The notes under the pieces are model-generated. The model had not been told where the DNA came from, ran no database searches, and worked only from the letters and a program-made list of their open reading frames with translations. Made by a program: the position numbers and the translations under genes. From assembly GCA_964035545.1 (NCBI GenBank), contig OZ037766.1, forward strand, positions 26,564,343 through 26,628,342: a DNA stretch of 64,000 nucleotides, in the 5' to 3' direction. Origin of the DNA: Bugula neritina (taxonomy: Eukaryota; Animalia; Bryozoa). Shown here piece by piece: positions 16,201 to 59,600 of the stretch. Position 1 is the first letter of the stretch; the number at the start of each line of letters is the position of its first letter.

Positions 16201-19200
16201 TGTACAGGAAAATCTTCAATCTCCATTATAACAGATACATTCTTGGTGACTTACCTAGACCACAGGCTAAGCGGTCAAGGGCAGATTCTGCAGCTACAGG
16301 GTTGGTGTCGGCCTCATCATCTTCAGGCTAGAATCAAATAATGATACAGGAATAAGTCATCTACACCGTATCTAATTTAATTGTATATGAATTAAAGAAA
16401 AATCGAATATTATTTCAAAAAAGCTAACAAATAAGAATAGGGCAAAAGAAAATAAAAACATCTTTCTTTGAAATGCTTTGCATATGATGACATCAATTAG
16501 AATGACAAGGGGGCTGTACCTACTACACCCCTGACCACCCCCTGACCACCCCCTGACCAGTACGAGTATTACAAGTGTAACGAGAAGCTAGTAACCTCAT
16601 CTTGTGTTGACCAATCATCTTCATCTTCCAAATCACACATCAGTTGCAGCACAAGCACTATGATAGTCGGTATGTACTTAGACTGTTTTCTCAACATAGC
16701 AGATGCTGTCTCGGAAAGGGTGGTCACAAGCTCTAAGGCTAGCTGTCTCCACGAGTCTTCCATCTCTTTGTTAGAGATAATCTACAGTACAGACACCATT
16801 AACAGGTAAAATTTACAGGATATAAATTATACAATATTCAATACATATCTCTAGAGACTAATGTACTGGAGTCACTTGCCTTAATATACAGTGCTTCCTC
16901 CATATCTCACAGTTCCCAGTTTTATGAAATTTTATAGGTCATGGGCAAATTTAACTGATGCGTCAGCTAAATCCGATATTCTACTATGTCATGAATTAAG
17001 GTTTCAGGGCACGTAGCTTAGTGAGAGACGGAGGGAGTACTGCCGTAACTTACCTCTAGAACAGAGGGTACAATAGTCACACTGCAATGACTTACCTAAA
17101 TAGAGTAACCTACTTTAATCTTGTACTTACCTTTATACAGAGCTCGAGGACAGAGGGTAGCTGTGGTCTGAGATACTTAGGGATATTCTCGGCCACGTCT
17201 ATCAGACACTTGAGAAGGATATCGTCTGTCTGTGAGTCCACAGACACAGTGATGGTGTGAATTATCCCCGGCAGCAGGTCTCTCAGGTAGACTAGCAGCT
17301 GCTGGTCCGTGTCATTAGACACCAGGAAGGAGCATGCTGCCTTGGCAGCTGAGAAACACACCTGGTGGAATACAGGTAAACAAATGCTACATGAACACAC
17401 CTGGCATAACACAGGTGAACAAATGATACATGAACACACCTGGTGTAATACAAGAGAAAAGACATGAAGTAAAAGAAAACCTAACTTTTCAGCAGCATTA
17501 GCTCATACTGAACTACTCTCTAGTCCGAAATCTTGACTTTACATCGCCATATATAGGGAAGGGGTGAAGTAGTAACACAACTTGTGTGGCACAGAAGCAG
17601 TATAATACATACATTACCGGACAAACTTTTAAAAAGAAGGTAGGAAAGTCACTTCCTGCGAGTAGCTCACTTACTTCTGACTGTTCGGATAAACACGAAA
17701 GTAACATCTGTTTGATAGTTTCTAGGTGGTTGGCTTGCTGGTTACCAAATATACCAGGGACAGAGCTGCAAACATACGAGTTCGTAAATATAGATCCAGG
17801 AGAGCTTTGTGGCTGGTGAAGGGTTACAAGGTAAAAGGCTGGCATGTATGCAACTGAGACGTTGCGTACAATTACATAACTTAGAAATGTCTAGCCACCC
17901 AGCACCCTGGTATATGACCAGAAAACTTCTAAGAATTTACCTAGCATACAGGTATTCGCAAGGTCCCCATGTAAATGCACTGTGTAAGATGAAATGATAC
18001 ACTTTATGAATATTTTTATCCTACTTCATTGCAGAACATATCATATAAGAGTATAAGCATTAAACGGCGATAATTAACGGTGTGTAATGAAGTGTGTTGA
18101 GTGACAGAAAACAACTTTAAAGTTTCAACTACAATTACAATAGTTAATAATAATAAAAACTATCTTCAACTATTGATGGAAGGATTCACAAGATACGATT
18201 GTGAAATTGAACTGATATTAAAAATAGCAGTTCTACCACAGCATACCTAATAATACCTGCTGCCTGTATGTTAGATCACATTCTTATATAACTACACTGT
18301 CACTCATATAATTCAGGGAATGCATACCTAGTTAGTCCAACAACAAGAGCAGTTATATAGTTAGTATAGAATACACTAATCTACTATAATCACGGTGGTA
18401 CATCACGAATCGCTGACATTCCTGGCCCATGATGTCATGATTCTACATGCACTGCAATATTAAGCTGGCAGCTGATGAAGGTGTTGGGAAATGCTGACAC
18501 ACGCACTGTAAGGTGAGTTCTATTTAATCCAATAAATACAATTAGTTGAGGTAATTAGCAAAGGTAATTAGAAGGCCCTTCTTCTAACTAGCATCATGGA
18601 CAAGTAATTGAAATGGCAATACAAGATCATCTCTTAATGGTGCTGCTAATGGAGCACAAAAATTATTGGATGGGCAGTAAAGAAAATCAGGTAATTTTAG
18701 CTGTATTGGCAGTATCAGACCACTAGCAGCCTAATATCAGACCACTAGCAGCCTAATATCAGACCACTAGCAGCCCAATATCAAACCACTAACAGGAACA
18801 CCTTTTGGAAGCTAAATTTGAGTACAACAATCCATATGGCTAGCATTTCATACATTTAAATTACTTTATACTTTGATGATCTGTACAACGCAAATAAGGT
18901 ATTAGGAAATACTCTTTTATAATTACAACAATGCTCAAGCTGCTTAGTACCTTGTGCCCAACTGTGGCACAAGGAGACTTACAGCACAAGGCAGTAAGGA
19001 ATAGCTGAGTACCTGAATATGTGAAGAGCACTGTCCTTCAGGGACGCCTCCGTAGACTGCACGCACTCAAAGAGAAACTGTAGGATCTCAGGCCAAGTAT
19101 TGTTAGACTCCTCATCTACAAACACACAAGTACGCCAGTTACACACATCAAAATACTCACTAGGTTAGACCAGGGGTTTCTAGCCTTTTCAGCGCGACGG

Positions 19201-21424
19201 AATATTTCATGACGAGGGCAACATTTTAAACTTTAGCTTGAGCTGGGGGGGGGGGCCACAGTATCAGTATTCTCCGAATTATTTTATCCTAAATCCTTAT
19301 GAAGCATTACGCAAGAAAGTCCCAATAGTTAATGCAGGCTGCATGTTTTGCAGCACGCGGATATTTTATCCTAAATCCCTATGAATTATTACGCAAGAAA
19401 GTCCCAATAGTTAATGCAGGCTGCATGTTTTGCAGCATGCGGATAAATAAGACATTTAAAAGGTGGTTTTTCACTTTAATGTATACTGTGAAAATAACTT
19501 TTAGTCTTATGCCTTTGAGGGTCACATAAATGTAAGCAGGGGGCCACATCCAGCCCTGGAGCCGCCTGTTGGACAGCCCTGGATTAGATTGTCACGTATC
19601 CAGTAGCCCCTCTCACCTACCAATCAGATTCCTGCACAGCTCAGCGGCAGCGTCGCAAGCCTTCCTCCTGAGGGACACTTCCTTTTCCTCTCTGATGGCG
19701 GTGAGTAGCTGATGCTTGGCGGCAGCTTTATGCTCGTCCGGCAGCTTTTCCCACAATTCCTCAAAGTCTCCGGTGAACAGCCGTCTGAGCAACACCACCG
19801 CCAGGATACGCATCTGACAAGAGCAGATCACATGCAGACAGATGACAACAAACAGCAGGTTCTCCACATAAGTTATAGATATTGAGTTTACCTGTTAGCA
19901 TAGCTTCAGGAAGTCAAGCTAAGAGCATATATTTACTAACAAAACATCTAAAACACTTTGTAGACCCCTTTAAGAATGTTGTAGAATTGAAAGCATTACC
20001 TGAACTGCACTGTTACATTCCAGACCAAAGACTAAATATAGCATGACAGGTACATAAACAATTATAACTTACCTCCAGTGACTTGGAACCATCTCTGGCC
20101 ACAGATAGAAGAAGCTCCAGTCTTTGCACAGGTGTTATGGTATCGTATATCGTCTGCAAGGAGATAAACCAAAGCCTCAGAGCATATATTTAAAGAGCAA
20201 AATCCTAATAAACCATGACACTAGGCTACAAATCAGTCTATTACACATAGTATAATGTAAGCTTGAAAAAGAGGTCAAGAGTTAGAGGTTTGCAACTAAT
20301 AGGTACTAGATAAGCTAGCATGTCAACTAGTTTAAGCCAAACAGTGTCAAATTTTGTGATATCCTCAAAAAAGTAGACTGATTACCTGTAGGCAATAAAA
20401 TAAATTCAACCCATACTTATAAAATACAATTGACTCTAGCACCATTTAAACTTAGTTGAATTGAGCAACAATAAAGCTAGTCCATAACAGTTGAAAAAGA
20501 CCAACAGTTATTTGTAGCATACTCTTACTTTAGGAGTGTTTAAACTGTGATTACTTAAAGTTAGTATCATTACTATTATACTTAGTAATACCACTACTAG
20601 TACTACTGAAATATTATTCATTTTGACAGAACTTGAGTATGTTGGGTTGAATAAGCTATCACTATAAATATTACTAAATATTGCCTATCTCAGTCTTACC
20701 ACCCTTCATAAAAAATAGTTAGCCTCAACTTGAACTACCTCAATCTACCTAGTCTCTTTTAACCAAAGCCAAAGGACAGGTATAGCCTACATAGCAAAAG
20801 TTACTTTAACTTGAATTATACTTATAGTAATACTAATCCTTAGTTATATTTATAGCCATGGGCATAATTTAAACTAAAACCATAAGAATTAAGATTAAGT
20901 ATAATAAATATAATAACTATTACTATAAATAAAAACAAATTCATTAATATTATAATTATTATTAATAATTATTGATAATTTATCTATCCTTATATTTAAT
21001 TTTACTATAACTTAAATGTAAATTGTACTAACAAAAGTTAGTTATTAGTTATACTAATACTTACAGTTACTACTCTGACTCAGTCTTATAACTTACCAAT
21101 AAAACTAAAAGTAAAAGCTATACCTATGCCTATTACTATTAGTATTACTATTCTATTAGTATTACTATTAGTATTGGGTAAAGTATTAGTATTACTTTTA
21201 GTAAAGTGATACTAAGACTAATAGTAATAGTAAATGATTTATTATTACTATGAGTATTAATATTACTATTATTAATAGTAATAGTAATACTATTGGCTTT
21301 ACTTTAAGTTTTATATTTAAGTTCAACTTTTAGTTTTTACCTCTGCTGAACTTCTGGTCTCATTATCACCACTGAGCAAATTTTGAAGTATTTCATGAAA
21401 CTGTTGTTGAGTATTCTCGGCCAT
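7202..21424 (-). CDS. IPO5: Importin-5 (karyopherin beta-3), about 25 coding exons
   Basis: First exon 21341-21424 reads [28 protein letters not shown]. Internal exons carry IPO5 signatures [111 protein letters not shown] and [15 protein letters not shown]. Last exon 7202-7285 ends ...ALYTTMNS*. The introns I checked are GT-AG. Confidence 0.96.
8405..8545. repeat. 42-bp intronic tandem repeat, about 3 copies (IPO5)
   Basis: TACGATAAT recurs at 8411, 8453 and 8495. Confidence 0.85.
10158..10495. repeat. 21-bp intronic minisatellite (TTAAACCACGCCCCTACTGTG), IPO5
   Basis: Direct periodicity; explains the spurious ORFs 10152-10475 and 10156-10455. Confidence 0.95.
11337..11530. repeat. 21-bp intronic minisatellite (TAGCTAGTAATACAGTGTGAG), IPO5
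   Basis: Direct periodicity, starting right after the donor of the exon at about 11535-11646. Confidence 0.95.
13455..13790. repeat. 39-bp intronic minisatellite, IPO5
   Basis: GTATACAGGTAGAC recurs at 13562, 13601 and onward; the array starts about 10 nt after a donor site. Confidence 0.95.
14597..14806 (-). repeat. 41-bp tandem repeat x5 spanning an IPO5 exon end and 5' splice site
   Basis: Minus-strand unit TAGACAGCATAATCCAGAAGTTAGCTGAG|GTGGGTGTGGTT, with exon-end positions at 14777, 14736, 14695, 14654 and 14613. Confidence 0.92.
17355..17452 (-). repeat. 39-bp tandem repeat that triplicates an IPO5 3' splice site
   Basis: CCAG|GTGTGTT on the minus strand, with first exon bases at 17361, 17400 and 17439. 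Confidence 0.88.
18713..18795. repeat. 22-bp intronic tandem repeat, about 4 copies (IPO5)
   Basis: TATCAGACCACTAGCAGCCTAA repeated. Confidence 0.85.
19171..19581. mobile_element. Non-autonomous hAT-like DNA transposon (MITE) in an IPO5 intron
   Basis: Ends CAGGGGTTTCTAGC ... GTTGGACAGCCCTG resemble hAT/Charlie termini. The 8-bp flanks GGTTAGAC and GATTAGAT match at 6/8. Contains an internal direct duplication of about 80 bp. Confidence 0.7.
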
Positions 21425-27592: not shown

Positions 27593-29194
27593 ATGGCCGA
27601 AGCAGCTGGATCTGCTTTACCCAACACATGGGAGGACACACGCGTGTGGGGCTGCGCCCCCGAACAACTTATCTCTAACATTTTCAGAGGCTCTCAAAAA
27701 GTATATTTCACTAAGGCAGGCAGCAGCTCAGAGCATCGGCAGTACTTTGAAGCATTCTTTGCTGGCAGTGCTGACCCAGTAAAGAAATATTTCCGAATTG
27801 AAGTAGGTAACAGTAAACACAGGGAAATCAAGTTTTATGCTGCTAATGGACGCTACTCATCATTGTGCGTGGCTAAATGCTCTATTCAAAGTCCAGACAC
27901 GGACATAATGACGCTAGTTATGATGTACCACAAAAAAGGACAAGCAGTAAATGAGGTTGCAAAAGCAAGACTGACATCAAATGGAGCTGCCGATATAGCG
28001 AATGGAGAAATGCTAAAAGTTGTGAGAAGAGATAACATAATTGTTATTGAAACAGCGCGATATGGCGAAGTGTTGATGCATCTACTCGACATTGAAAAAA
28101 AGGAGCCCAGCAAGTGTGCATTTTTAACACGTTGCATGGGCAAGCAAGATCCAGTTATCATGATTTCTTCTCTTTATTTAGCTTTACATTGCTTTTATTC
28201 AGAAGCAAAAAATGGTCTCTTGTACAGCTTAAATGAGTTGCTATATATTCCTTCAAGTTGTGTTCTTCAGTGCTTGACAGACATAGCGTCGCATGTTTTA
28301 CAGAAAAGACACTGTTTCTTGACAGTAGCAGCTGGAAATGAGCAATGCCTGAACGTCGAGCATGAGCTAATAGTTGGCAATCAACCACATCTTTTTATAC
28401 AGGTTAAAGGAAGAGAACCTAACAGCGGCTTTTTTATCCAGGCTTTTAACAGAAACAATGATGAGGTGTTTCGTCTAGTAGAAGTTTCTAACCGCGACTG
28501 CATACTATATATCAATCAAACTGAAATGATTGGCCAGGTTTCTTTTAGCAGACATCTTACTAGTTACTCAAATCAGAAAGGAGCAGAGGTGATCAGCGGG
28601 CAGAGTAAACAGCACGCCTCACACCCATGCCATGTTACGTTCCGCAGCACACTGTCCATGGCTTTTCTAGCTTCCGCCACAAGCAATCTTATGAATCAGC
28701 TAATAAGAATTCAAAGATTGCACAATTCAAACTTTGAACCCAGTGACTTTGCTGCCATGATCTGTATGACTTTATATCACATTCACTTTGACTCTAATAT
28801 TACCTCGGTAACTGCTGGTTTAGGACCTCCGAGCACTTCTGCAGTAGAACATCCACGGAGATCTTGTCCTGGGAGAACATCCGCCAATCAACATCAAAGC
28901 CAACATCAGAATCTTCCTCCACCTCGATATTCAAGTCATCCCCGACAGTCCCAACAAGCAGCACCATCTGCTCTCCCTAATATGTCCAGTCAACCTACAG
29001 ATTTGCTGAGTTGTTTTCAGGGTAGAGCCTCTACTCAACTTCAGAATCAAAACCAGATCTTAGCACCTTCTTCAGTGTCAGATCTTTCACAGACACAATC
29101 ATCTGATTCTGATTTACAAATAGCTCAGCGCGAACAGTCTCTGTCAGATGCTCTACCTAAGGCTTCCTTAACTGGATATTATCAACAATTTTAA
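27593..29194 (+). CDS. Intronless 533-aa protein; probable scramblase/tubby/LURP-like domain(s) plus Q/S/P-rich tail
   Basis: Long non-repetitive ORF in an AT-rich region with a good start context (AAACATGG). Segments FFIQAFNRNNDEVFRL, EMIGQV, YSNQKGAEVI and DFAAMICMTLYHIHFD resemble phospholipid scramblase motifs by eye. The fold call is inference. Confidence 0.75.
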   Translation: MAEAAGSALPNTWEDTRVWGCAPEQLISNIFRGSQKVYFTKAGSSSEHRQYFEAFFAGSADPVKKYFRIEVGNSKHREIKFYAANGRYSSLCVAKCSIQSPDTDIMTLVMMYHKKGQAVNEVAKARLTSNGAADIANGEMLKVVRRDNIIVIETARYGEVLMHLLDIEKKEPSKCAFLTRCMGKQDPVIMISSLYLALHCFYSEAKNGLLYSLNELLYIPSSCVLQCLTDIASHVLQKRHCFLTVAAGNEQCLNVEHELIVGNQPHLFIQVKGREPNSGFFIQAFNRNNDEVFRLVEVSNRDCILYINQTEMIGQVSFSRHLTSYSNQKGAEVISGQSKQHASHPCHVTFRSTLSMAFLASATSNLMNQLIRIQRLHNSNFEPSDFAAMICMTLYHIHFDSNITSVTAGLGPPSTSAVEHPRRSCPGRTSANQHQSQHQNLPPPRYSSHPRQSQQAAPSALPNMSSQPTDLLSCFQGRASTQLQNQNQILAPSSVSDLSQTQSSDSDLQIAQREQSLSDALPKASLTGYYQQF

Positions 29195-30244
29195 AACAAA
29201 AACAAAATTATTTTGTTGTAATTTATATTTGAATTCAGTTGTACTCTCCTAAAAAGATCCTAAGCTCTTATAGTAAATTTAATAAATAATGCAAGCTATA
29301 AAATCAAGCTATATATGAATTCTAATAAAATAGACAATTAACTATAATATATTATAGTATACAAGGCAAATTATTGGAAAAGAGTTTTAATCGTCATTTT
29401 TAATACTTGAAAATTCGGCTTAAGTATTTATTCGAAAGACCTTTTTAAACTATTTCATTATTACTTTGATATTATATATTTGTTAAGTCAGCAGGTTTTC
29501 TGAATTTCTTTCCGCCATGCTTGTATAATTCTATAAACCAAACATGTCATATTACTTTTTTCATTCAGATTTAAAATATAACCTAGTTGGAATAAATAAT
29601 AAGAGGCTACAATACTTTGAATGATTTGTAATGGAAATAATTTTTCTTTATATAATTACCTTATAGAAATTGAAACATTTTAACATGATTCACATAAAGA
29701 CATTATATTTAGTGCATGTATGCAACAGAAATTTATTAGAACTAAAATTTTGACCAAATCTTGGATAGGTGCAATACTTAGTGTGTTCTTGTTTTTAGTA
29801 ACATTTAATTCAAAAACGAAGAGTAGATAATTAAACTCATAATAACATTATATTGCATAAATTTGAAAAACTCAATGTACAATTAATTTGTGTTACATGT
29901 ATTGTGTGTGTGTTGTGTGTGTTGCATGTTTGTGGTGCGTGCGTTTTATATTAGATATCAGATGTCACTTACAAATAAAGCGCTGGAAAGTATTAAACTA
30001 CCAAAGACTATAACTTCTTCAAATAATATATTATTATAGTTTATGCTTATATTGTGAGTCTGAGTGTTTAATGTAAAACAACACATTTAGCTTTTTGCAG
30101 ATACACCAGTTGCTTTATTGTTCAAAAAACAGGCAATAAACTTTCCATAAATTTGTGCAGAAGGTTATAATCTGTAGAAATGCATGAAGTTTAAACTATT
30201 TTCAACTGTTGATAGTGAAGACAGTTTCCTGGTCAGAAGTTGCT

Positions 30245-31106
30245 TTAGCGTATATTGTGGCATCTGCAGCGTGTACTAGTGGCATCGTACCCAAAACTTG
30301 TGTAACCTTTATTTTCACAAATTTTACTGCATCTGTATACTGCGAGGAAAAGCTCATATGTAGCTGTCACGGAACCTTTTAAAAAGTTAAACGAGCATTT
30401 AATAACATCAACATAATATATTTTAGTATTTTTAGCACATTGTAGGCAATATGCTGGTAGAAATAACCATCATGCTTAAGAACGTAGCAGGTGAAACTTC
30501 CATTAACCTGAAAAACTATCACTATGCATCTCTGAGATGGTGCCCGGTAAAAATGTCACAGGTAAAAATGGAGCTGGCAATAATGGCACAAATAGAAAAG
30601 TATAGGAAAAAGTGGCACATTTTTAATATTAGGGTTTTGGGGTTTGGGAAAGTTTAATATCAGTGTGCAGTTTTTTAAACCTACTTTGCCATTTGTGTCA
30701 TTATTACCTGTGCAATTTTTACCTGCGCCAAATTTATGTGTGCTAATTTTACCTGTGCCCTTTTAAACATGCCATTTTTATCTAAAGTCCATAAAAACAC
30801 AGCAGGTAAAGTTTCCATGGACTTTGTAAACTATCACTACATCGCCAAGACTTATCTTTCATTCAATGCATAGAGTCAGTGTCAATGGATGAAACTACAG
30901 CTACAGGATAAAGCAAACTTTATCCATTGAATTGTGGGAATGTAGTGATTTTGTTCATTAGTAAATATACAGAGATTTTGACGTACATCAATATAAAACT
31001 AATCTTCATTGTTGATGGAATATACAACAGTTATAATATGGTACTTACATGTTGAAATAATGGTGATAAGTACAGCCAGTAACAAAGCAAAACACCTCAT
31101 TTTCAT
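30245..31106 (-). CDS. Secreted 4-Cys defensin-like (CS-alpha-beta) peptide precursor 1, 62 aa
   Basis: Exons 31049-31106 and 30245-30375, phase-1 GT-AG intron. MKMRCFALLLAVLITIISTCSVTA-TYELFLAVYRCSKICENKGYTSFGYDATSTRCRCHNIR*. AATAAA on the minus strand at 30114-30119. Confidence 0.85.
30539..30790. mobile_element. Palindromic interspersed element (HINE/MITE-like) in the intron of peptide gene 1
   Basis: Repeated CAGGTAAAAATGGCA motifs on the left are mirrored by TGCCATTTTTACCTG motifs on the right, around a GGGTTT-rich core. The same family occurs at about 31815-32075, 35201-35431, 36466-36722 and 40834-41033. The class assignment is inference. Confidence 0.6.
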
Positions 31107-31459
31107 TTTTTAGTCTACAGACATATTATTTGTGAAAGTTTGTTAAAATGCAATAAATATATACAGAAAGAAGTTCATAACATGTTTGCGAATTATATAG
31201 CATAAACACACCTTTCAATTTTAATAGAAACACATGTTTTGTAAAAAGCTATGCCACTATAAGTTAGACATAATATTAAGAACTATATGAATGAATCCTT
31301 AACCTGGCAAATGTTTTAATAAATCAAACATATGTAGCAATGTCAGCCAGGGGGTAAAAATAGATAATTTAGTTTTTTACCTGAAGCTTACAATAAACAG
31401 AAATCTTGTATACAGTTATAGTAGTGAAGAAACACCTATAATGTAGTGCAAAAAGAGCA

Positions 31460-31517
31460 TCTATAATTATATATTATTTTTGATTTAGATTATTACACGT
31501 GGCATTCAAATGATTGG
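31460..31517 (-). promoter_or_regulatory. Putative core promoter of peptide gene 1 (CCAAT, CCACGTG, TATA-like)
   Basis: Minus strand reads CCAAT-N10-CCACGTG, then TATATAATTATAG. The CCAAT/CCACGTG pair is conserved in unit 2 (36143-36165) and unit 3 (40517-40539), upstream of a conserved 5'-UTR donor AAGCTTCAG|GT. Confidence 0.5.
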
Positions 31518-32799
31518 TTAACAGGTTGACCCATGCAGCTTCTACAGCTACTATTATGGTTTGATCCAGAACTTTCCGGTCTGTTTGCATTCTATTTTAA
31601 ATTTCTACAAAATACAAAACTTATACAACATATTTAGCTCCGCATTCTAGAACATTTGGTAATTTACCTCAAAGGTCATTTCACCTATAACAAGTTATAA
31701 TTTCTTTGATAGAAGTTTATTCATTCTTTTAAACAAAAGAAACTGTTGAAATAAAAGAGATAACAAGTTTTTTTTAACTTTGTTCATTTTAGTTTAAAGA
31801 TTTTTTTAATGACTGGTGCCTGGTAAAAATAGTACTGGCAATAATGGTACAAATGAAAAAGTAGGTAAAAATAGCAAATTTTTCCCTTATTGGGGTTTAG
31901 TTTTGAGGGTTTAGATTTGAGTGTAAAAATTTGGGGTTTGGGCAAACTTAGTATGTATCAATGAGCCTATTTTTACATACTTTTCCATTTGTGCCATTGT
32001 AACCTGTGTCATTATTACCTGTGTAATTTTTATCTGCACGATTTTTACCTGTGCGATTTTTTATACCTAAAATCAGAAAATGCTATAACTTCTCTCTCAA
32101 TATACAGGGTTAGTAAAATCCCCAGCTTAGTGTACCAGTCTGCGTCTTTCTGTAATTTAAGATCTGACCTACTTTCTATTACATAATCATTATTTCTGTG
32201 TTCCCATGTAGCAGCTGAATGCTTGCAAGTATGGATTTGCTGTTGCGGTTTTTATTAACCGCGCATCAAATGAAGAACTCATGCTACGAATAGGTACGGA
32301 GTAAATTTCAAATCCCTTTTTGCTTATATATAATACATCCTTATTTGCAATATATATACTATACTCTCTTTTACTACATCCTACGGGCATTAGATCTGTT
32401 TTCTATAAATATTAGTAGCCAATTGATTGCTGATATCTGCCTTTGTCACAAAAGATTTCATTTTTGCATAATATAGATACAATTTTCCGTTGGAGGAACC
32501 GTTGAATGGATTTGCAATTGCCGTTTTCCTTCAATTAATACAGCTTTTGTTACTTGGCTATAAATATCTTTTAATTGCCCATGCCCTGTACATTTTGTTA
32601 AACAGTGACTTTTTAACCCCTCACACCTGCCTTTAAAACCTTTATAAAATCATCATTATTAGAATGTTGCTATCTAAAAACTGTAAATCAATGACAGTTG
32701 GTATAATAAAACGATATTAATGTCAACAGCTATTTAATAAAGTCTATGCATATGTCAATAAATAGAATCTGGTTGACACTGAAACAGCTGTTTTTCACA

Positions 32800-32802
<3 letters not shown>

Positions 32803-32854
<52 letters not shown>

Positions 32855-32871
32855 TATATATATATATATAT

Positions 32872-32912
<41 letters not shown>
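32803..32912. repeat. (TA)n microsatellite at the end of unit 1
   Basis: Seen directly. Confidence 0.97.
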
Positions 32913-32915
<3 letters not shown>

Positions 32916-33581
32916 CATAGTTGCGTTTATACTTCTACTGAAAAAAGTTCCGATTTTCAGTTAATAATACTTGTCCGGGTACCCCTTTGTAGTCAAACTG
33001 AAAATTGTTGAAATCATATTGATGCGAAAGCTTACTTTCTAAAAATTAAATTTGACTTGCCTAATCGCTTATATTTGATATTTGATATTTGCTATTTGAT
33101 GCCCTTTGTAAACCTCGTGAATTAGTGAAGCTTATAGCATAAAAAGGATAACTGAGAAGGCGTAGACGATATAATTATTGACATATATAAGTACATCATT
33201 TAATCGCCAAAGTCATTACTAAATAACGTTGTTTACAAGGAGTTATTACTCCTTAGGAGTATTATCCTGAAATCAGCCGTTTAAGTTATCACAATACAAA
33301 AAAATTTTTCGAGTGGCTTTTACAATACAATGCAACTCAAAAATGAATTTCACCTCGGTCAAATTGAATTCCTGACTGAAAATAGTGAAGGTATAAACAC
33401 AACTAAGGATTCAGTATTTTGTCTTTATATAATCACCTTATAGAAATTGAGACATCCCTTTAACATGATTCACATAAAAACTGTATCTATTTGGTGCATG
33501 TACAATAGAAAAATATTAAAACTAAATTTTTTCAAAATCTTATATAGGTGAAATATTTATAGAGTGTTCTTGTTTTTAGTA

Positions 33582-34526: not shown

Positions 34527-34855
34527 TAACATTTATTTTATAAACGAAGAGTGTGTGCGTGTGTGTGCGTGTGTGTGCGTGTGCGTGCGTGTGCGTGTGT
34601 GTGTTTTGCAAAAGTGTTTTATATTATATATCAGGTGTAGCTATTACAAATAAAGTGCTGGAAAGTATTAAATTACCAGAGACTATAACATCTTCAAATA
34701 TATTATAGTTTATGCTTATATTGTACGTCTGTGTTTTTAATGTAAAAGAACACATTTAGTTTTTTACAGATACACCAGTTGCTTTATTGTTCAGGAAACA
34801 GGCAATAAAATTTCCATAAAGTTATACAAAAAGTTGTAATCCGTGGAAATAAAAT

Positions 34856-35749
34856 TTAAACTATTTGCAACTGTTGGTAGTGAAGACAGTTTCCCGACCA
34901 AAAGTTGTTTAAGTGTTTATTGACGCACGCGCAACGCCCAGTATTGGTAACGTATCCATAATTTGAGTAACCTTTCCTTTTACAAACTTCACTGCATTGG
35001 TAACTTGCGTGGAGAACTTTATATCTAGCTGTCACCGAACCTTTTAAAAATTTAAATGAGCGTTTAACAACATCAACATAATATATTTCAGTATTAGATG
35101 CACATTGTAGGCAATATGTTGGTAGAAATAGCTATCATGCCTAAGACCATATCAGATGAAACTTCTATTAACCTCATAAACTATCACTACATCTCTGAGA
35201 TGGTGTTCGGTAAAACAGCACAGGTAAAAATGGCAGAAATAGAAAAGTAGGAGAAAATGGCACATTTTCAATATTAAGGTTTGGGGGTTTGAAATGAGAG
35301 AGGGGGTTTAGGTTTTGGGTGGGACGAGGGTTTGGGTTTGGGGGTTGGGAAAGTTTAACTTCAGTGTAGCTTTCGTATACCTACTTTGTCATTTGTGCCT
35401 TTATTACCTGTGCCATTTTTACCTGAAATCCCTAAAAACATAGCAGGTGAAGCTTCCATTGACTTCATAAACTATCACTACATCTCCGAGACTTATCTTT
35501 CATTCAATGCATATATAGGGTCAGTGTCAATGGATGAAAGTGCAGCTACAGGTTAAAGCAAACTTTATCCATTGAATAATGGGACCCAGTGATTTTGTTC
35601 ATGGGTAAGTACTTCGAGATTTTGAAGTACATCAATATAAAACTAGTTTTCATTAAGTTGATAGAAAATACAACAGTTATATGGTACTTACATGTTGAAA
35701 TAATGGTAATGAGTACAGCCAGTACCAAAGCAAAACACCTCATTTTCAT
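34856..35749 (-). CDS. Secreted defensin-like peptide precursor 2, 80 aa (stop-loss, 18-aa extension)
   Basis: Exons 35692-35749 and 34856-35040. MKMRCFALVLAVLITIISTCSVTA-RYKVLHASYQCSEVCKRKGYSNYGYVTNTGRCACVNKH-LNNFWSGNCLHYQQLQIV*. TTA at 34910-34912 stands where the paralogs have TAA. Confidence 0.82.
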
Positions 35750-36761
35750 TTTTTGGTTCTCAAACAAATTATTTGTGAAAGTTTGCTGAAATATAATAAA
35801 CATATACAGAAAGAAGTTCATAATAAACTGTTTTCGAATCATACATAAGCTGTACATCTGCCAATTTTAATGGAAACACACGTTTTGTGAAATGTTATAC
35901 AGCCAAGTTAAACCTATTAGAAACTATATAAATAAATCTATAACCTTGCAGATGTTTTAATAAATCGAACATATATAACAATGTCAGCCAGGGGGTAAAA
36001 ATAGATAATTTAGTTTCTCACCTGAAGCTTACAATAAACAGAAATCTTGTAGGCCCTATGCAGTTATAGTAGTTAAGAAACACCTATAATGTAGTGCAAA
36101 AAGAGCATCTATAATTATATATCATTTTTGATTTAGATTATTACACGTGGCATTCAAATGATTGGTTAACAGGTTGACCCATGCAGCCTCTACAGCTACT
36201 ATTTTAGTTTGATCCGAACTTTCCGGTCTGTTTGCATTCTATTTTAAATTTCTACAAAATACAAAATTTATAACAAATTTAGCTTCGCATTCTAGAACAT
36301 TTGTTGATTTACCTCAAAGGTGACGCGGTCATTTCACCCATAACAAGTTATAATTTCTTTTACAGAAGTTTATTTATTCTTTTAAGCAAAAGAAACTGTT
36401 GAAATAAAAGAGGTAACAAGTTTTTTTAACTTTATTCACTTCAGTTTAAAGAAACTGTTAATGACTGGTGCCTGGTAAAAATAGCACAGGCAATAATGGT
36501 ACAAATGAAAAAGTAGGTGAAATTGGCAAATTTATCCCTTATTGGGGTTCGGTTTTGAGGGTTTAGTTTTGAGGGAGGGTTTGGGCAAACTTAACATCAG
36601 TGTGCCATTTTTACCTGTGCCATTTTTACCTACTTTTCCATTTGTGCTATTATTACCTGTGTCATTTTCACTGTGCCATTTTACTTGTGCTGTTTTTACT
36701 TGGGCTGTTTTTATCTAAATTTGTGAAATTGCTATAACTTCCATCTCAATATACAGGGTTA

Positions 36762-37104
36762 GCCTAGGGCCACACTGTGCGTATTTTCGCATGCGAAAAT
36801 TAAAATCACAAGTAGCAAAGGTGTCCACTGTAGCGTCAGTGATGCGTGATAAATAAAGCTTTCATTTTTAAATCGCACTCGCTTTCAATAAAACGCAATT
36901 TGCTGGAATATAGCACCAAATAAAGAAATTGGGCTCGCTGAATAACTACCAGCCAATTAGGTGACGACGACAGAGACGATTCGCACTTGCGTTGAAAATG
37001 CAGAACGACAAGTGCAAACGTTTTCTCAACGCGCACAGTGGACACCTTTGCTAGTTGTGATTTCAATTTTCGCATGCGAAAATACGCACCGTGTGGCCCT
37101 AGGC
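36762..37104. mobile_element. PIF/Harbinger-type MITE, 343 bp, TTA TSD
   Basis: Near-perfect TIRs of about 70 bp starting GCCTAGGGCCACAC, with TTA on both sides. The empty site CAGGGTTAGTAAA is present in unit 1 (about 32105) and unit 3 (about 41068). Confidence 0.93.
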
Positions 37105-38129
37105 TTAGTAAAATCTCCAGGTTAGTATACCAGTCTGCTTTTTTTTTTGCAGTTTAAGATTTGACACACTTTCTATTACATAATCATTTATTCTGTGTTC
37201 TCATGTATCAGATAGATTTGCATTTGCGGTTTTTATTAACCATTCATCAAATGAAGAATTCATGCTACGAATAGGTACGGAGTAAATTTCAAATCCCTTT
37301 TAGCTTATATATAATACATCCTTATTTGCAATATATACTACTATCTTTTTCTACATCCTACGGGCATTAGATCTGTTTTCTATAAATATTAGTTGCCAAT
37401 TGATTGCTGATATCTGCCTTTGTCACAAAAGGTTTCAATTTTGCATAATATAGATAGAATTTTCCATTGGAGGAACCGTTGAATGGATTTGCAATTGCCG
37501 TTTTCCTTCAATTAATACAACTTCTGTTACCTGGCTATAAACATCTTTTAATCAGGCATGTCCTGTCTGTTTTGTTAAACTATGACTTTTTAACAGCTCA
37601 CACCTGCCTTTAAAACCTTTATGAAATCATCGTTATTAGAATTTTGTTATCTAAAACTGTAAATCAATGACAGTTGGGGTATAATAAAACGATATTAATG
37701 TTAACAGCTATTTAATAAAGTCTATACGCATATGTCTATAAATAGAATCTGGTAGACACCAAAACAGCTGCTGTTTACAGAATATATAATCAAAAAAAAG
37801 CAATTCAATTAGATGTTATTTTACTGTGCTACTATTAGTTACGTGCTTCTTTAGCACTCCTCAGGCACATGAATTACTGAATTTAAATTTTTACATTAAA
37901 AAAATCAAGATGTAAAACACAACGTAAAACATAATGCAAATATAGTGGTGACTTTGAGGTTATTATAGGCTTTTAAATATTTAAAAAAATCTATAAAGAA
38001 ACACAATATAGGCACACAATTTATAGCAAATATAATTTTATTGGGTGGTAATTATATAGGTGTTTGAATATTATTTATTGTAGTACATGTATATATAAAA
38101 TATAAAATATAGAATCTCCAAGTCTTATG

Positions 38130-38778
38130 GCTGCACAGTAAAAAAATTTTTGAATGTCGGCAGGTTGATAGGAGTTCATTTTGCTTGTTTAAAGTACACA
38201 TGTTAGGTTTTGTATAAAATAAAAAAATATTCCCATAAGCATAAATTACGCGGTATTGTACAGTTTCAATTGTTTCAATATTTTCCAACTTATATTGTGT
38301 TTAATGTTTTTGTTAGTTAGTTGACAAATGTATTTACTAAGTTCTGCCTAGTTCGCTTTCTCTTTGTTTTTAAATGACAATTTGCAGTTTGAATATCTTA
38401 GTTTGAAAGATCCTTCGCTCAGGCCAATGTACATTGCAGGCTCTATTTCAGCAGTTTCTACAGTTGATTGGTATATTACATTGCTTTCCTGACAGTTTTC
38501 TTTTAGTGGACAGCTTTCTCTTTCTCTGCCGTTGTAGTTTTTTTGTGGAAGTTTTGTTTTTGTGTTTCTTTTTTTTAATATTCTATTATTGTGGGCGCTT
38601 ATATATTATTGTCTGTTTTATTTTTGGCATACAACTTTAGCTACCTTTCATATTGTTTATATTAATTATTTTATAGAATAGATGTTGCTTCGGGAATTCT
38701 TCATTCATTATTTTAAAAAAGGTTTTTGCAATTTTTGTGGCTACATGTTAATTGGCTGTATATGATGGATTGTTTGAC
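38130..38778 (-). mobile_element. Decayed Penelope-like retroelement 3' end (linker and GIY-YIG endonuclease)
   Basis: Minus-strand translation, with stops and frameshifts, gives FPKQHLFYKII...SCMPKIK...SAHNNRIL...CPLKENCQESNVIYQSTVETAEIEPAMYIGLSEGSFKLRYSNCKLSF...*AELSKYI...ISWKIL...TLNKQNELLSTCRH. This matches the PLE endonuclease pattern. Confidence 0.85.
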
Positions 38779-38980
38779 GTGATTTGCATAAAAATGTACC
38801 GTTTGGTGCATGCAAAATAAAAATTTATTAGGCTGAAATTATTGACAAAATCCTATATAGGGGTGTATTATCTATTGCTTTCTTGTTGTTAGTTACATTT
38901 AAGTTAGAATAAACGAAGAGTGGATAATTTACTCATAATTATATATTTATATTATACATTTGAAAAATTCAAGGTAAAAT

Positions 38981-39248
38981 ATGTGTTGTGTGTGTTGTGC
39001 GTGTGTTGTGTGTGTGTTGTGTGTATGTGTGTTGTGTATGTGTTGTGTGTGTGTTGATTTGTGTTGTGTGTTGTATGTATTTGTGTGTATGTGTTGTGTG
39101 TGTGTTGTGGGTGTGTTTGTGTGTGTGTTGTTTGTGTGTTGTGTGTGTTGTGTATGTGTTGTGTGCATGTGTGAGCGTGTGTGTGTGTGTGTGCGTTTTC
39201 GTGTGTGTGCTTGTGCGTGTGTGTGTGTATGCGTTGTTCATGTGTGTT
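38981..39248. repeat. Expanded imperfect (TG)n/(TTGTG)n microsatellite
   Basis: Seen directly; shorter homologous tracts at about 29900-29945 and 34550-34605. Confidence 0.95.
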
Positions 39249-39537
39249 TTACATTATATCAGGTATAGTTTATAAATAAAAAGCTGAAAAGTATAAAATT
39301 ACCAAAGACTATAACTTTTTCAAATATATTATAGTTTATGCTTAAATGCTTTGCGCCCGTGTTTTTAATGTAAAAGAACACATTTAGTTTTTTGCAGATA
39401 CACCAGTTGCTTTATTGTTTAGGAAACAGGCAATACAATTTCCATAAATTTATTCAAAAAGTTGTAATATGCGGAAATAAAATTTAAACTATTTGCAACT
39501 GTTGGTAGTGAAGACAGTTTTCCGGCCAAAAGTTGTT

Positions 39538-40116
39538 TTAGTGTTTATTGCTGCATGTGCAGCGTTTTGTATTGGTAACGTATCCATAATATCTGTAACC
39601 TTTATTTCTACAATAGTCCCTGCATTTGGAAAGTGTGCGGAAATATCTAGGTCCAGCTGTCACGGAACCTTTTAAAAATTTAAATGAATATTTAACAACA
39701 TAAATATATATCTCTGTATTAAAAACATTGTAGGTAATATGCTGGTAGAAATAGCTATCATTCTTAAGAACATATCAGATGAAACTTCTATTAACCTCAT
39801 AAACTATCACTACATCTCTGAGATGGTGCACTACATCTCCGAGACTTATCTTTCATTCAATGCATAGGGTCAGTGTCAATGGATGAAACAACAGCTTCAT
39901 GCAGGTTAAAGCAAACTCCAACCACAAATATCTTATCCATTGAATTGTGGGAATGCAGTGATTTTGTTCATTAGTAAATACTTCGAGATTTTGACGCACA
40001 TCAATATAAAATTAATGTTCATTGTTGATAGAAAATACAACAGTTATATGGTACTTACATGTTGAAATAATGGTGATAAGTACAGCCAGTAACAAAGCAT
40101 AACACCTCATTTTCAT
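39538..40116 (-). CDS. Secreted 4-Cys defensin-like (CS-alpha-beta) peptide precursor 3, 62 aa, highly cationic
   Basis: Exons 40059-40116 and 39538-39668. MKMRCYALLLAVLITIISTCSVTA-GPRYFRTLSKCRDYCRNKGYRYYGYVTNTKRCTCSNKH*. The mature part has 10 K/R against 1 D. Confidence 0.87.
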
Positions 40117-41880
40117 TTTTTGGTTCTCAAACAAATTATTTGTGAAAGTTTGCTGAAATATAATAAACATATACAGAAAGAAGTTCATAACTTTTTTGCG
40201 AATCATATAACATAATATACATTTTTCAATTTTAATGAAATCGCATGTTTTTTAATCACCCGTCAAAAGCTACGCAACTATAAGTTGAACATATTAAGAA
40301 CTATATCAATGAATCTTATAGGGACTGGCAAGTGTTTCAGTAAATCAAACATCTATAGCAATGTCAGCCAGGGAGTAAAAATAAATTATTTAGTTTCTTA
40401 CCTGAAGCTTACAATAAACAGAAATCTTGTAATCTGTTATAGTTATAGTGAAGAAACACCTATAATGTAGTTCAGAAAGAGCCTTTACTTATATATCATT
40501 TTTGATTTAGATTATTACACGTGGCATTCGAATGATTGGTTAACCACTTGACCCATGCAGCCTCTACAGCTGTTATATAGTTTGATCCAGAATCTTCCGC
40601 TCTGTTTGTATTCTATTTTGAGTTTCTACAAAATACAAAACTTACAACATATTTAGCTCTGCATTCTAGGACATTGGTTAATTTACCTCAATTAAGGTGA
40701 CACAGTCAGTTCACCTATAACAAGTTACTATATATTTGTTCATTCTTTTAAGCAAAAGAAACCGTTGAATTATAAAAGATAACAGGTTCTTTTTAACTTT
40801 ATTCACTTCAGTTTAAAGAAACTGTTAATGACTGGTGCCTGGTAAAAATGGCTCAGGCAATAATGGCACAAATGGAAAAGTAGGTAAAATTGGCAAATTT
40901 TCATTATTGGAGTTTAGTTTTGAGGGTTTAGATCTGAGTGTGAAAGTTTAGAGGGGGGGGGGTTTGGGCAAACTTAGCATCAGTGTGCCATTTTTACCAG
41001 TGCCATTTTTACTTGTGCTGTTTTTATCTAAATTTGTAAAATCGCTATAACTTTTATCTCAATATATACAGGGTTAGTAAAGTCTCCTGGTTAGCTGTGC
41101 ACCAGTCTGCTTATTTTTTGCAGTGTAAGATCTGACACACTTTCTATTACATTATCATTTTTTCTGTGTTCCCATGCATCAGATGGATGCTTGCAAGTAT
41201 GATTTGCTGTTGAGGTTTTTATTAACCACGCACCAAATGAAGAACTCATGCTACGAATAGGTACGGAGTAAATTTCAAATCCCTTTTAACTTATATACAT
41301 CCCTATTTGCAATATATACTACTCTCTTTTTCTACATCCTCTGAGCATTAGATCTGTTTTCTACATATATTAGTCGCCAAGATTGCTGATATCTGCCTTT
41401 GTCACAAAAGATTTCATTTTTGTGTGACCTGTTTACAGGCTTTGCATAATAAAGATAGAATTTTCCGTTGAAGGAACTTTTTAAATGGATAAATGCAATT
41501 CCAGTTTCTCTCAATTCATTAACTTTTTTCAAACATTGATTGAAAAATTCATTCGCATGATTGGAATCATGGGATGTAAACGTAGTGATATAGAATATGG
41601 GTGACGTGGACAGCTGCTGATTTCCAGGTGCTACTTGGTTATAAATATCTTCTAATCGGGCATGCGCTCTGTATTTTGTTAAACTGTGACTTTTTAACCC
41701 CTCACACCTGCCTTTAAAACCTTTATGAAATCAGCATTATTAGGATTTTGTTATCTAAAAACTGTAAATCATTGCCAGTTGGTATAATAAAATGATATTA
41801 ATGTCAGTAGCTATTTAATAAAGTCTACACATATGTCTATAAATAAAATCTGGTAGACACCGAAGCAGCTGCTGTTCACA

Positions 41881-41882
<2 letters not shown>

Positions 41883-41941
<59 letters not shown>
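41883..41941. repeat. (TA)n microsatellite at the end of unit 3
   Basis: Seen directly. Confidence 0.97.
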
Positions 41942-41944
<3 letters not shown>

Positions 41945-41949
41945 GTAAA

Positions 41950-56688: not shown

Positions 56689-59600
56689 ATGGACCCAGTA
56701 ATATCATATATTCTTGCTGGAGTCATTGTAGTTGTTTTGGCTGCCCTCGTCTATCAGGCATTTACCTCTAAGAAAAGTAAGCAATAAATATGTCTAAAAT
56801 ATATTCATCATCAATTTAAGCAATGGTGTTCATATAATTCTGAATTGACATGTATTGCAATAGTTCTAAGTCTGCAATTTTATGCGCATTTGTGTGATAC
56901 TGATTTCAATTTTTTTAACAAGCACTTATTGATCTCTTATGACAAAGCTAGTGATTTAAACATCATCAGTCACTGCGGGTTTCATGTTTTAGGCAATGAA
57001 AGTGAACCTGCCGCTGTTAGACCTCGTGTACTTCCTGGGGCGGAGCTGAGAGAGGATCTCCCAGCGGGTGCTCGACGTAGACGCGCTGGTGCAGGTCGGT
57101 TAAAGTATACGTCTGATTGTAGTGTACACACAGCTCAGCAGTACTGTTATGCAAATCCATTGTTCTCTATCCACATACTTTTTAATGAAATATATTTTTC
57201 TTTAATTTTTTCATGCAATCATACTTGTTAAATAATAATTTGTTTACTCAACTATTTAAAGTGTAAATTTTAAATAGAGCAATTGTGATATGGCAACTTG
57301 GTAAATGTCTAATAACTTTTATAATACATTAAATGTTTACAAGATTAAATAATTTTCAACACATGATTTCTAGTTAAAGGCCGGTTCTTGCTACTGTATG
57401 GTGTAAAAGTATCTACAGTACAATATGTCCAGTATTTGAAGACTAGTCTTTGCTATACTATATCTACAGTACAATATGTCCAGTATTTCTATCATGTTTT
57501 AGTTGATAGACTACGGAGAGCTCGAGAGGCTGAGGCTGCTCGCCGGCAGGAAGAAGATTCCGGTAAGCTTAGTCTGCTGTTGTGATCATTACAGGGAAGA
57601 TGTTTGCTGTCAGACTGATTATTTTTCACAAAACACTGAATATTACATGTTATTTTACATAGATGAATAGTTTGATATCGTGCGACAGTGGGATGAGCCT
57701 GTTATAGTTATGGTGTAGTTTTTAAATTCTCTTAGTGTTCTACAGTGCAGACTTTTTTAGATGCCTCTGCTAATGAGGAAGGAGACTTGTTTGATTATAT
57801 TGCTCAGCCAGAAGGTAAAATTGGAGCTAAGAAAATGGCAAAACTGGAAGAAAAAGCGAGAAAAAGAGCCGACAGAGAGGTGAGTGCTATTAGAGCAACT
57901 TGTCCTAAATCACCTGGTGTCACACCACCTGTTGTCACACCACTTCCTGTCACACCACCTACCATCACACCGCCTGCTGTCACACCATCTTCAGTGACAC
58001 CACCTGCCATCATATCTTCATAATATGTATCTGCATATTCATATATCATACTCATATATTTCCAATGACTTTCATGTCTGGTGCAAACAGTTTTCTTTTT
58101 GCCTCAGACTCATAACACTTGCTCTGTGTAACGTGTTGGGGCTCTATTGCAGGCCATGGAGAGGGAGCGAGCTGAACAGAAAGAAAGAGACGCCCTTCTT
58201 GAAGAAGAGAGGAAGAAGGAAGAAGCTCGTCTTCTACGACTCGAGGCTAAGAAGGTATGTTGTTCTGTTCTTAAATAGAGAAATTAGTCCGCTAAAGGTC
58301 TGAGTAAATACTGTCGGGCAATTTGGTTAAATTGGTAACGATACTTGGGAATTCTCAAAGTTAGCGTAGGGCCACACGGTGTGTATTTTTGCAGACGAAA
58401 ATTTGCACCACAAGTAGAAAAAAGTGTCCGCTGTACAAAATATTGAGTCAGTGATATCGGAAAACTACTAGCTAATTATATTTGCGTTTAAACTTTACTG
58501 CTCGCCTTGTTTCTATGTCTACATGTGCGGGATAACTTAAAATTTTCATTTTTAAATCTCACTCGCTTTCAATATAATGTATTGTATATATATATATATA
58601 TATACACATATATATACACATATACATACACATATACATACACATATACATATACATATGTATGTATATTACCTTATATCCAAAATAGAAATAGTTGCAA
58701 GTGATTTTATGGTGAATGTGTGGAGATTTATGAAATTTTGTCTACTAGTGATGTTGGTTGTGTTAGCAGTTGCAGTTGTCTTCCCTATCTAGTCTGTTGT
58801 GGCCACAGATAACAGTGTTATAGCATGTTTTCTGATTGAAGGAAGAAGAAGCAAGAATAGCAAAGGAGGAGAAAGAGAAGAGAGAATATGAAGAGTATTT
58901 GGCAATGAAGAGTCAGTTTGCTATTGAAGAGGAAGGAGAAGATGCTGTCATGCAAACAGATGTAAGTATTATGTATATAGTGTAGTAGTTGTGTGTATAT
59001 AGTGTAGTAGTTGTGTGTATACAGTGTAGTAGTTGTGTGTATACAATGTAGCAGTTGTGTGTATGCAGTGTAGTAGTTGTGTGTATATAGTGTAGTAGTT
59101 GTGTGTATATAGTGTAGTAGTTGTGTGTATATAGTGTAGTAGTTGTGTGCATGTAGTGTAGTAGTTGTGTGTATATAGTGTAGTAGTTGTGTGCATACAG
59201 TGTAGTAGTTGTGTGTATACAGTGTAGTAGCTGTGTGTATACAGTGTAGTAGTTGTGTGTATACAGTGTAGTAGCTGTGTGCATATAGTGTAGTAGCTGT
59301 GTGCATATATAGTGTAGTAGTCGTGTGTATACAGTGTAGTAGTTGTGTGTATATAGTGTAGTAGTCGTGTGTATACAGTGTAGTAGTTGTGTGTATGCAG
59401 TGTAGTAGTTGTGTGTATGCAGTGTAGTAGCTGTGTGCATATAGTGTAGTAGTTGTGTGTATATAGTGTAGTAGTCGTGTGTATACAGTGTAGTAGTTGT
59501 GTGTATATAGTGTAGTAGTTGTGTGTATATAGTGTAGTAGTCGTGTGTATACAGTGTAGTAGTTGTGTGTATATAGTGTAGTAGCTGTGTGTATATAGTG

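Follow-up and report, generated by a model that had tools for sequence, protein, structure and literature searches.

That tandemly duplicated genes keep a conserved signal sequence while the mature peptide becomes hypervariable is a textbook pattern for effector peptides that are secreted, and its mechanism is not new. In mussels, the MgCRP-I family has been described as pairing a leader that is conserved with a cysteine-framed mature part that is hypervariable (PMC4558851). AtLURE1 has been reported as a species-specific cluster of defensin-like genes (PMC3525529), and Arabidopsis defensins have been reported to be under positive selection (PMC5731061). A conserved signal exon followed by a positively selected mature exon has been reported for vertebrate β-defensins (PMC4571063, which concerns avian genes, and PMC3161384). 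The legume NCR peptides contain four or six cysteines, and one of them, NCR044, is largely disordered (PMC7354933); two-disulfide CSH peptides in myxobacteria were proposed by Zhu, as cited in PMC11561630. Here we describe a locus of this general kind in the bryozoan Bugula neritina. The window, the whole stretch of 64,000 nucleotides that was analyzed (C2:26,564,343-26,628,342 in assembly coordinates), is AT-rich eukaryotic DNA that contains, on its minus strand, a tandem series of three genes with two exons each, whose ATG codons lie at 31106 (copy 1), 35749 (copy 2), and 40116 (copy 3). Taken as a whole, the reading that we favor, and consider rather probable, is that these are triplicated genes for peptides derived from the cysteine-stabilized αβ (CSαβ) fold, the mature part of which was diversified by positive selection. 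The literature searched contained no description of a bryozoan defensin or antimicrobial peptide. The new elements are the bryozoan carrier family, the two-disulfide scaffold, and the presence of a conserved sister array as a contrast in the same genome.

The three copies share with the cis-defensins (arthropod and mollusc defensins, mytilin, ASABF, drosomycin, short scorpion toxins, and plant defensin-like peptides) the CxxxC motif of the helix, the CxC motif of the last strand, and a predicted arrangement of a helix and a hairpin. Members of both groups are small, cationic secretory peptides whose signal is encoded by exon 1 and whose mature part is encoded by exon 2. Unlike the six-cysteine members of that group, the three copies have four cysteines without a C1-C4 bridge, and no sequence relative was found outside this genome. 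Like MgCRP-I, they form a lineage-specific family in a lophotrochozoan filter feeder, but MgCRP-I has six cysteines in a different framework and no sequence relation between the two was found. AtLURE1 is similarly a tandem cluster of fast-evolving defensin-like peptides, although it serves in plants as a reproductive attractant and has six cysteines, and its structural score against the bryozoan peptides implies a shared small fold at most. The vertebrate β-defensins have the same two-exon layout and the same contrast between signal and mature part after tandem duplication; in contrast to the bryozoan peptides, they have six cysteines and an unrelated fold (trans-defensin). In the NCR and CSH peptides, as predicted for the three copies, a helix and a strand are linked by two disulfides only. 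The NCR peptides, which act on a symbiont, also combine a conserved signal with a very variable mature part, but neither group has a sequence relation to the three copies.

Each precursor comprises 62 residues, a 24-residue signal and 38 mature residues. The components of the three genes are as follows.

30245-31106, minus strand: copy 1, whole gene.
31049-31106, minus strand: copy 1 exon 1, from the ATG at 31106 to the GTAAGT donor, with the start codon and 19 codons plus 1 nt of the signal.
30376-31048, minus strand: copy 1 intron, 673 nt, phase 1, which includes a repeat element present elsewhere in the duplicated unit.
30245-30375, minus strand: copy 1 exon 2, coding part, with the signal end SVTA, the mature codons (30248-30361), and the TAA stop (30245-30247).
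35692-35749, minus strand: copy 2 exon 1 (signal peptide).
35041-35691, minus strand: copy 2 intron, 651 nt, phase 1, with an element of about 265 nt with inverted-repeat arms inside it.
34913-35040, minus strand: copy 2 exon 2, with the signal end and 38 mature codons (34913-35026).
34856-34912, minus strand: copy 2 read-through, from TTA (34910-34912) to TAA (34856-34858).
40059-40116, minus strand: copy 3 exon 1 (signal peptide).
39669-40058, minus strand: copy 3 intron, 390 nt, phase 1, with the inner part of the intron element deleted.
39538-39668, minus strand: copy 3 exon 2, coding part, with the signal end, the mature codons (39541-39654), and the TAA stop (39538-39540).

The original prediction had placed all three copies in 34913-39657, but that span holds only copies 2 and 3, and copy 1 lies outside it. 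In every copy, exon 1 is 58 nt long and is followed by a GTAAGT donor, the intron acceptor is TTTTTAAAAG, and exon 2 encodes the last four signal residues (SVTA) ahead of the mature codons; the splice sites are intact in all three. The cleavage site was placed after V-T-A (positions -3 to -1), which is preceded by a hydrophobic leader, by applying the -3/-1 rule to the sequence without a predictor. This site, the disulfide pairing, and the expression of the genes are presumptive. Exons were joined for codon arithmetic only, and database searches were made exon by exon. The mature peptides have net charges of +3, +6, and +9 and contain four to six tyrosines. The retention of the scaffold residues described below and a ratio of nonsynonymous to synonymous rates (ω) near 0.2 in the signal suggest that the genes are probably functional.

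The contrast between signal and mature part that had been noticed in the sequence was recovered on recounting. The signal peptides are nearly identical: of their 24 residues, 1, 1, and 2 differ in the three pairs. The mature part has only 11 residues out of 38 that all copies share: the four cysteines, Lys18-Gly19-Tyr20, Gly24-Tyr25, Arg31, and Asn36. Copies 2 and 3 differ at 20 of the 38 mature residues, and just two of their codons differ in a purely synonymous way (ACT/ACA and CGT/CGC). Over the first ten mature codons of this pair, all ten residues are changed through 13 differences at codon positions 1-2, with none at the ten third positions. The accompanying caveat about a shifted AGATAT is a fair one, in that a 6-nt insertion together with a 6-nt deletion in copy 3 could affect codons 1-4; the tests were therefore repeated without these four codons. 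Extending the gapped AGATAT alignment to the whole N terminus was rejected, since by hand count it matches 9 of 24 aligned bases as compared with 17 of 30 in the ungapped alignment.

A three-way alignment of the duplicated unit (MAFFT; 3596 columns) is gap-free in the mature part with the settings that were used for the flanks. Pairwise p-distances (proportions of differing sites) are 0.136-0.156 in non-coding DNA (2353-2738 aligned sites), 0.02-0.07 in exon 1, 0.08-0.20 in the intron, 0.13-0.18 in the 3' flank, and 0.28-0.33 in the mature segment, which has thus diverged about twice as much as the linked non-coding DNA. Between copies 1 and 3, no other 114-nt window of the unit alignment reaches the value of the mature segment; in the other two pairs such windows occur only at the alignment ends or in the intron repeat. 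The edges of the hypervariable block coincide with the predicted signal cleavage site and the stop codon. Between copies 2 and 3, for example, 32 of the 114 mature nucleotides differ, as compared with 4 of the preceding 40 nt and 3 of the following 70 nt. Within the mature segment, the divergence is 0.33-0.42 at codon positions 1-2 and 0.16-0.18 (6-7 of 38) at third positions, and the variable sites are distributed over the three codon positions as 17/22/10.

The proportion of nonsynonymous differences (pN) in the mature part is 0.31-0.38 as compared with 0.14-0.16 for the linked non-coding DNA (one-sided Fisher p of 1.2e-4, 3.5e-8, and 2.8e-5 for the three pairs), and the excess is retained when codons 1-4 are omitted (p of 2.7e-4, 3.5e-5, and 1.4e-3). 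In contrast, the mature third positions and the proportion of synonymous differences (pS, 0.15-0.27) are indistinguishable from non-coding DNA (p of 0.16-0.65). Because the three pairwise comparisons are not independent, neutral evolution was also simulated, on a tree with three branches that was fitted to the non-coding sequence. Of 20,000 runs, none gave as many as the 39 variable first and second positions observed, and 7 gave as many as the 27 variable residues. The nonsynonymous rate dN of the mature part (0.39-0.53) exceeds both the synonymous rate dS (0.17-0.34) and the intron divergence (0.09-0.23), and does so also without the four codons affected by the possible indel pair; the outcome that the original prediction had named as its refutation did not occur. 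By the Nei-Gojobori (NG86) method, dN/dS of the mature part is 1.2, 3.0, and 2.0 for the three pairs, and a one-ratio maximum-likelihood estimate on a star tree puts ω at 2.2-2.7 in the mature part and near 0.2 in the signal. An acceleration of amino acid replacement that is limited to the mature peptide is thus well supported. The excess over the linked neutral rate is strong evidence and stronger than that from the codon model; the within-gene ω test for selection is suggestive, not decisive. Of the diversifying selection proposed in the original prediction, the confinement of accelerated replacement to the mature peptide holds up, whereas an ω above 1 is only marginal.

Several observations weigh against diversification by positive selection, and some of them favor other explanations. 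The formal tests are based on three paralogues and 38 codons, and their pairwise versions are not independent. The likelihood-ratio test of ω against 1 in the mature part gives p of 0.016-0.07 under the different codon-frequency models, and with codons 1-4 removed the values become 1.9-2.3 for ω and 0.06-0.19 for p. A comparison of pN with pS alone gives p of 0.40, 0.055, and 0.155, and the parsimony ratio of nonsynonymous to synonymous changes is 35:7 as compared with a neutral expectation of 4:1. An ω that is not firmly above 1 would also suit relaxed constraint, that is, decaying or dead copies that drift neutrally, an explanation that we consider improbable. Copy 2 reads TTA (34910-34912) at the position of the TAA stop in the two other copies. 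It departs from copy 3 there by one A/T change, and its frame is extended by 18 residues, including a fifth cysteine, up to the TAA at 34856-34858. The downstream frame of copy 3 is likewise open, for 17 codons past its stop. The TTA may represent a true loss of the stop codon, a C-terminal pro-piece, or an assembly error. Decay would also agree with the occurrence of internal stops in several members of the wider family. The intact open reading frames (ORFs) are weak evidence of function in that 28% of the neutral simulations are free of stops, and all four cysteines are kept in three copies in 8% of them. Neutral drift cannot, however, outrun the rate of the linked non-coding DNA, and the mature part has diverged at twice that rate. 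The four cysteines and seven other scaffold residues are kept, and the chance that the eight first and second positions of the cysteine codons would remain fixed at the observed 51% variability is about 0.003. The low ω of the signal also speaks against decay, as do the splice sites and a conserved box in the 3' untranslated region (3'UTR), which are intact in all three copies.

Gene conversion is common in tandem arrays. Concerted evolution, in which old and distinct mature exons persisted while conversion or unequal crossing-over homogenized the signal exon, intron, and flanks, is unlikely in our judgment, although it has somewhat more to recommend it than decay. Which two copies resemble each other most depends on the part of the unit: it is copies 1 and 2 at 250-550 nt upstream (p of 0.01-0.05), copies 1 and 3 in exon 1, and copies 2 and 3 in the intron, where two stretches of about 50 nt show no difference at all. 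These mosaic patterns indicate that conversion has acted and may have depressed the divergence of the flanks, which also counts against our reading. An old exon, however, predicts high divergence at synonymous and third positions, and those of the mature part match the non-coding rate; codon positions 1-2 exceed position 3 with p of 0.034, 0.004, and 0.079. In every pair, the conversion tracts would need to end precisely where the signal is cleaved and where the stop codon lies, and even then the sparing of the mature part from conversion would require selection for diversity. Least probable, and very much so, is a local artefact of mutation or alignment, whether through hypermutability of the exon, indels that escaped notice, or the choice of a wrong reading frame. 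Besides the possible indel pair in copy 3, with AGATAT displaced by two codons, there is a +1 frame in the mature exon that each of the three copies leaves open and in which copies 2 and 3 have a slightly higher residue identity (21 of 39). The result nevertheless persists without codons 1-4, the mature alignment is gap-free, and in a six-cysteine array elsewhere in the genome (on C9) exon 2 is five times less diverged than the intron, which argues against an intrinsically hypermutable exon. As a coding frame, the +1 frame (30245-30364, 34910-35029, and 39538-39657, minus strand) was rejected. It has pN of 0.25-0.33, pS of 0.31-0.37, and ω of 0.7-1.1, lacks cysteines, a shared stop position, a consistent acceptor, and a homologue, and has 14-21 of 39 residues identical; we take its openness to be an accident of composition. 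A further point against our reading of the locus is that no relative of the family was found among about 15 billion predicted proteins; a word-index search queried with the second exon of copy 3 gave no candidate. Diversifying selection on the mature peptides is, on balance, probable, not proven.

The assignment to the CSαβ group is based on a fold model and on homology within the genome. The spacings Cys11-x3-Cys15 and Cys32-x-Cys34 are invariant in the three copies, and C1 and C4 of the six-cysteine CSαβ array are absent from their mature part. AlphaFold2, run on the three-row alignment, gave a model with a mean predicted local distance difference test (pLDDT) score of 79.9, in which a helix (residues 6-22) is followed by a hairpin of two strands (24-30 and 35-41). 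The structural matches with a low root-mean-square deviation (rmsd) are CSαβ peptides, with Z scores of only 3-4.6, which are low because the model has only 42 residues. The top match is AtLURE1.2 (Z of 4.6, rmsd of 1.9 over 37 residues); mytilin gives a Z of 4.4 and an rmsd of 1.2 over 32 residues. Further matches are ASABF, navitoxin, drosomycin, and nasonin-1M, with cobatoxin and lucifensin found by Foldseek. We read the three peptides as derivatives of the CSαβ fold with two predicted disulfides and without the C1-C4 bridge.

Sequence profiles gave only sub-threshold matches. In Pfam, those for the three copies included Gamma-thionin (16.3 bits; cut-off of 25.1), Defensin-like (10 bits), and Myticin (9-10 bits), all below the cut-off, and none of the models Defensin_2, Toxin_2/3, and Scorpion_toxin_alpha-beta reached its threshold either; a six-cysteine relative scored 19.4 bits against Scorpion_toxin_alpha-beta (cut-off of 27), and Defensin_2 gave a single sub-threshold match over this genome. 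An exhaustive HMMER search of 1.84 billion cluster representatives with a three-sequence profile returned only two multi-WSC proteins (E of 9e-6 and 6e-5), a sequence search of the PDB returned chance Kunitz fragments only, and the exact pattern of the exon 1/donor junction had no match in metagenome contigs. The best score in an Atlas feature search was 0.79, and all of its matches were scorpion-toxin or thionin clusters, which serve as leads only.

Membership of the WSC family (PF01822) was considered and rejected. The motif C-x3-C...GY-x-Y...C-x-C of the three copies matches the WSC profile and recurs in a more distant paralogue, L013. Copy 3 (24.9 bits) and L013 (20.5 bits) nevertheless fall below the cut-off of 27.8, copies 1 and 2 are unmatched, and the match covers only profile positions 25-55 of 82 with four of the eight cysteines, whereas relatives within the genome have the six-cysteine CSαβ array. 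We take the resemblance to reflect convergence on a double staple between helix and strand, with a WSC origin as the alternative.

Genome searches by DNA or by a single protein reached only the three copies; the wider family was reached with a pattern of the signal exon and a profile of five exon 2 peptides, which gave 44 matches in this genome. These include further four-cysteine genes on C2, C3, C6, and C9 and at least 25 six-cysteine genes, in both orientations, at C9:4,421,937-4,568,458 (loci L044-L057), with the canonical pattern C...CxxxC...C...CxC. A common gene layout, with a signal similar to that of the three copies, is found throughout the family: exon 1 is short and hydrophobic, the intron is in phase 1 and 220-380 nt long, and exon 2 starts with S-(V/M)-(A/T)-E. 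An hhalign comparison of the four-cysteine profile with a six-cysteine peptide of the C9 array gave a probability of 96% (E of 4.4e-9).

In 12 modeled copies of the C9 array, p is 0.098 in the intron, 0.13-0.15 in the flanks, and 0.019 in exon 2. The mature peptides of these copies are identical, and two of the copies each have one changed signal residue. The similar divergence of introns and flanks suggests that the array is about as old as the triplication. Since the C9 copies conserve it, the mature exon of this type of gene is not intrinsically hypermutable, and the identity of the peptides appears to indicate strong purifying selection or amplification for dosage. Four other members have in-frame stops in the mature exon, L034 (C1:13.62 Mb), L036 (C9:7.475 Mb), L037 (C3:9.92 Mb), and L040 (C3:32.05 Mb). 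They are probably pseudogenes and therefore suggest birth-and-death turnover of the superfamily.

A scheme that would accommodate these results begins with a young tandem triplication, with units of about 4.5 kb each, giving three genes for secreted cationic 38-residue peptides with two predicted disulfides. The peptides would have kept the CxxxC...CxC core of the CSαβ fold and lost the C1-C4 pair of their six-cysteine relatives. After duplication, the signal, intron, UTRs, and promoter region would have drifted at or below the neutral rate, and exposed residues of the mature part would have been replaced at about twice that rate around a fixed scaffold (the four cysteines, KGY, GY, R, and N). 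We infer that selection caused this excess; most likely this was positive, diversifying selection, acting on peptides whose external targets keep changing. Such targets would most probably be microbes, in host defense or in the management of surface or symbiotic bacteria. The original prediction had proposed a host-pathogen or prey arms race. Peptides that are cationic and defensin-like may plausibly act on microbes; an animal that feeds by ciliary filtering is unlikely to be in an arms race with its prey.

B. neritina is known for its chemical symbiosis, and its bryostatin-producing symbiont is vertically transmitted. A role of the three genes in symbiosis would be pure conjecture. One version of it, which we regard as a long shot, is that a bryozoan-specific CSαβ superfamily, made up of conserved six-cysteine arrays and rapidly evolving branches with two disulfides, polices the surface microbiota and the bryostatin symbiont, much as NCR peptides serve legumes, with the three copies as a variable "specificity" arm. 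If the genes are expressed, the genome would offer a natural experiment within one superfamily, with a constrained six-cysteine array on one side and three diverging two-disulfide peptides on the other, and the contrast would help to show which minimal CSαβ surface carries specificity. The three peptides are short, cationic, and easily synthesized.

A comparison of the window with itself by BLAST indicates that the genes lie in duplicated units of about 3 kb each. The units and the elements shared by their 3' regions are as follows.

29903-32919, minus strand: duplicated unit 1, with the 3' flank, the gene, and about 1.8 kb of upstream DNA (self-BLAST and alignment).
34570-37788, minus strand: duplicated unit 2, 81-88% identical to unit 1 (self-BLAST and alignment).
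39174-41947, minus strand: duplicated unit 3, 76-89% identical to units 1 and 2 (self-BLAST and alignment).
39498-39537 (copy 3), about 30205-30244, and 34870-34909, minus strand: 3'UTR box directly 3' of the stop codon, with the inverted repeat AACTGT...ACAGTT.
39411-39416 (copy 3), 30114-30119, and 34783-34788, minus strand: candidate poly(A) signal AATAAA, about 122 nt past the stop codon in copy 3.

The 3'UTR box (GGAAACTGTCTTCAC...ACAGTTG) is conserved better than the coding part. It recurs in the distant paralogues L013 (1630-1665), L037, L038, and L041, on C2, C3, and C6, and may be a regulatory hairpin. The AATAAA hexamers, judged by their sequence and position, are putative poly(A) signals.

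The element of about 265 nt in the intron of copy 2 (35160-35500) has arms at 35212-35251 and 35380-35419 and a core that is rich in G/T and resembles telomeric DNA. Direct repeats of about 38 nt flank the element, which looks like a miniature inverted-repeat transposable element (MITE). Relatives of it are found at 30561-30764, 31822-32060, 36474-36711, and 40841-41087. The intron of copy 3 is only 390 nt long because the inner part of the element is missing there. Two long, near-perfect palindromes detected by self-BLAST (36761-37105 and 32784-32974) are intergenic within the repeat units, and microsatellites of the (GT)n type lie downstream of copies 2 and 3 (34550-34605 and 38985-39240).

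Outside the three genes, an uninterrupted ORF of 533 codons with a Q/S/P-rich tail (27593-29194, plus strand) is situated some 1 kb past the 3' end of copy 1; it had no match in Pfam and no usable match in the Atlas. The 4-kb region 58000-62000 has an extreme GC skew (0.24-0.47) and contains three nested ORFs (58818-60536), the Pfam matches of which are of low complexity only. On the minus strand, a block of higher G+C content (about 40%) extends over 8000-20000 and includes an ORF at 9643-10140 that matches Importin repeat 6 (E of 1.7e-10) and is probably part of an importin gene.

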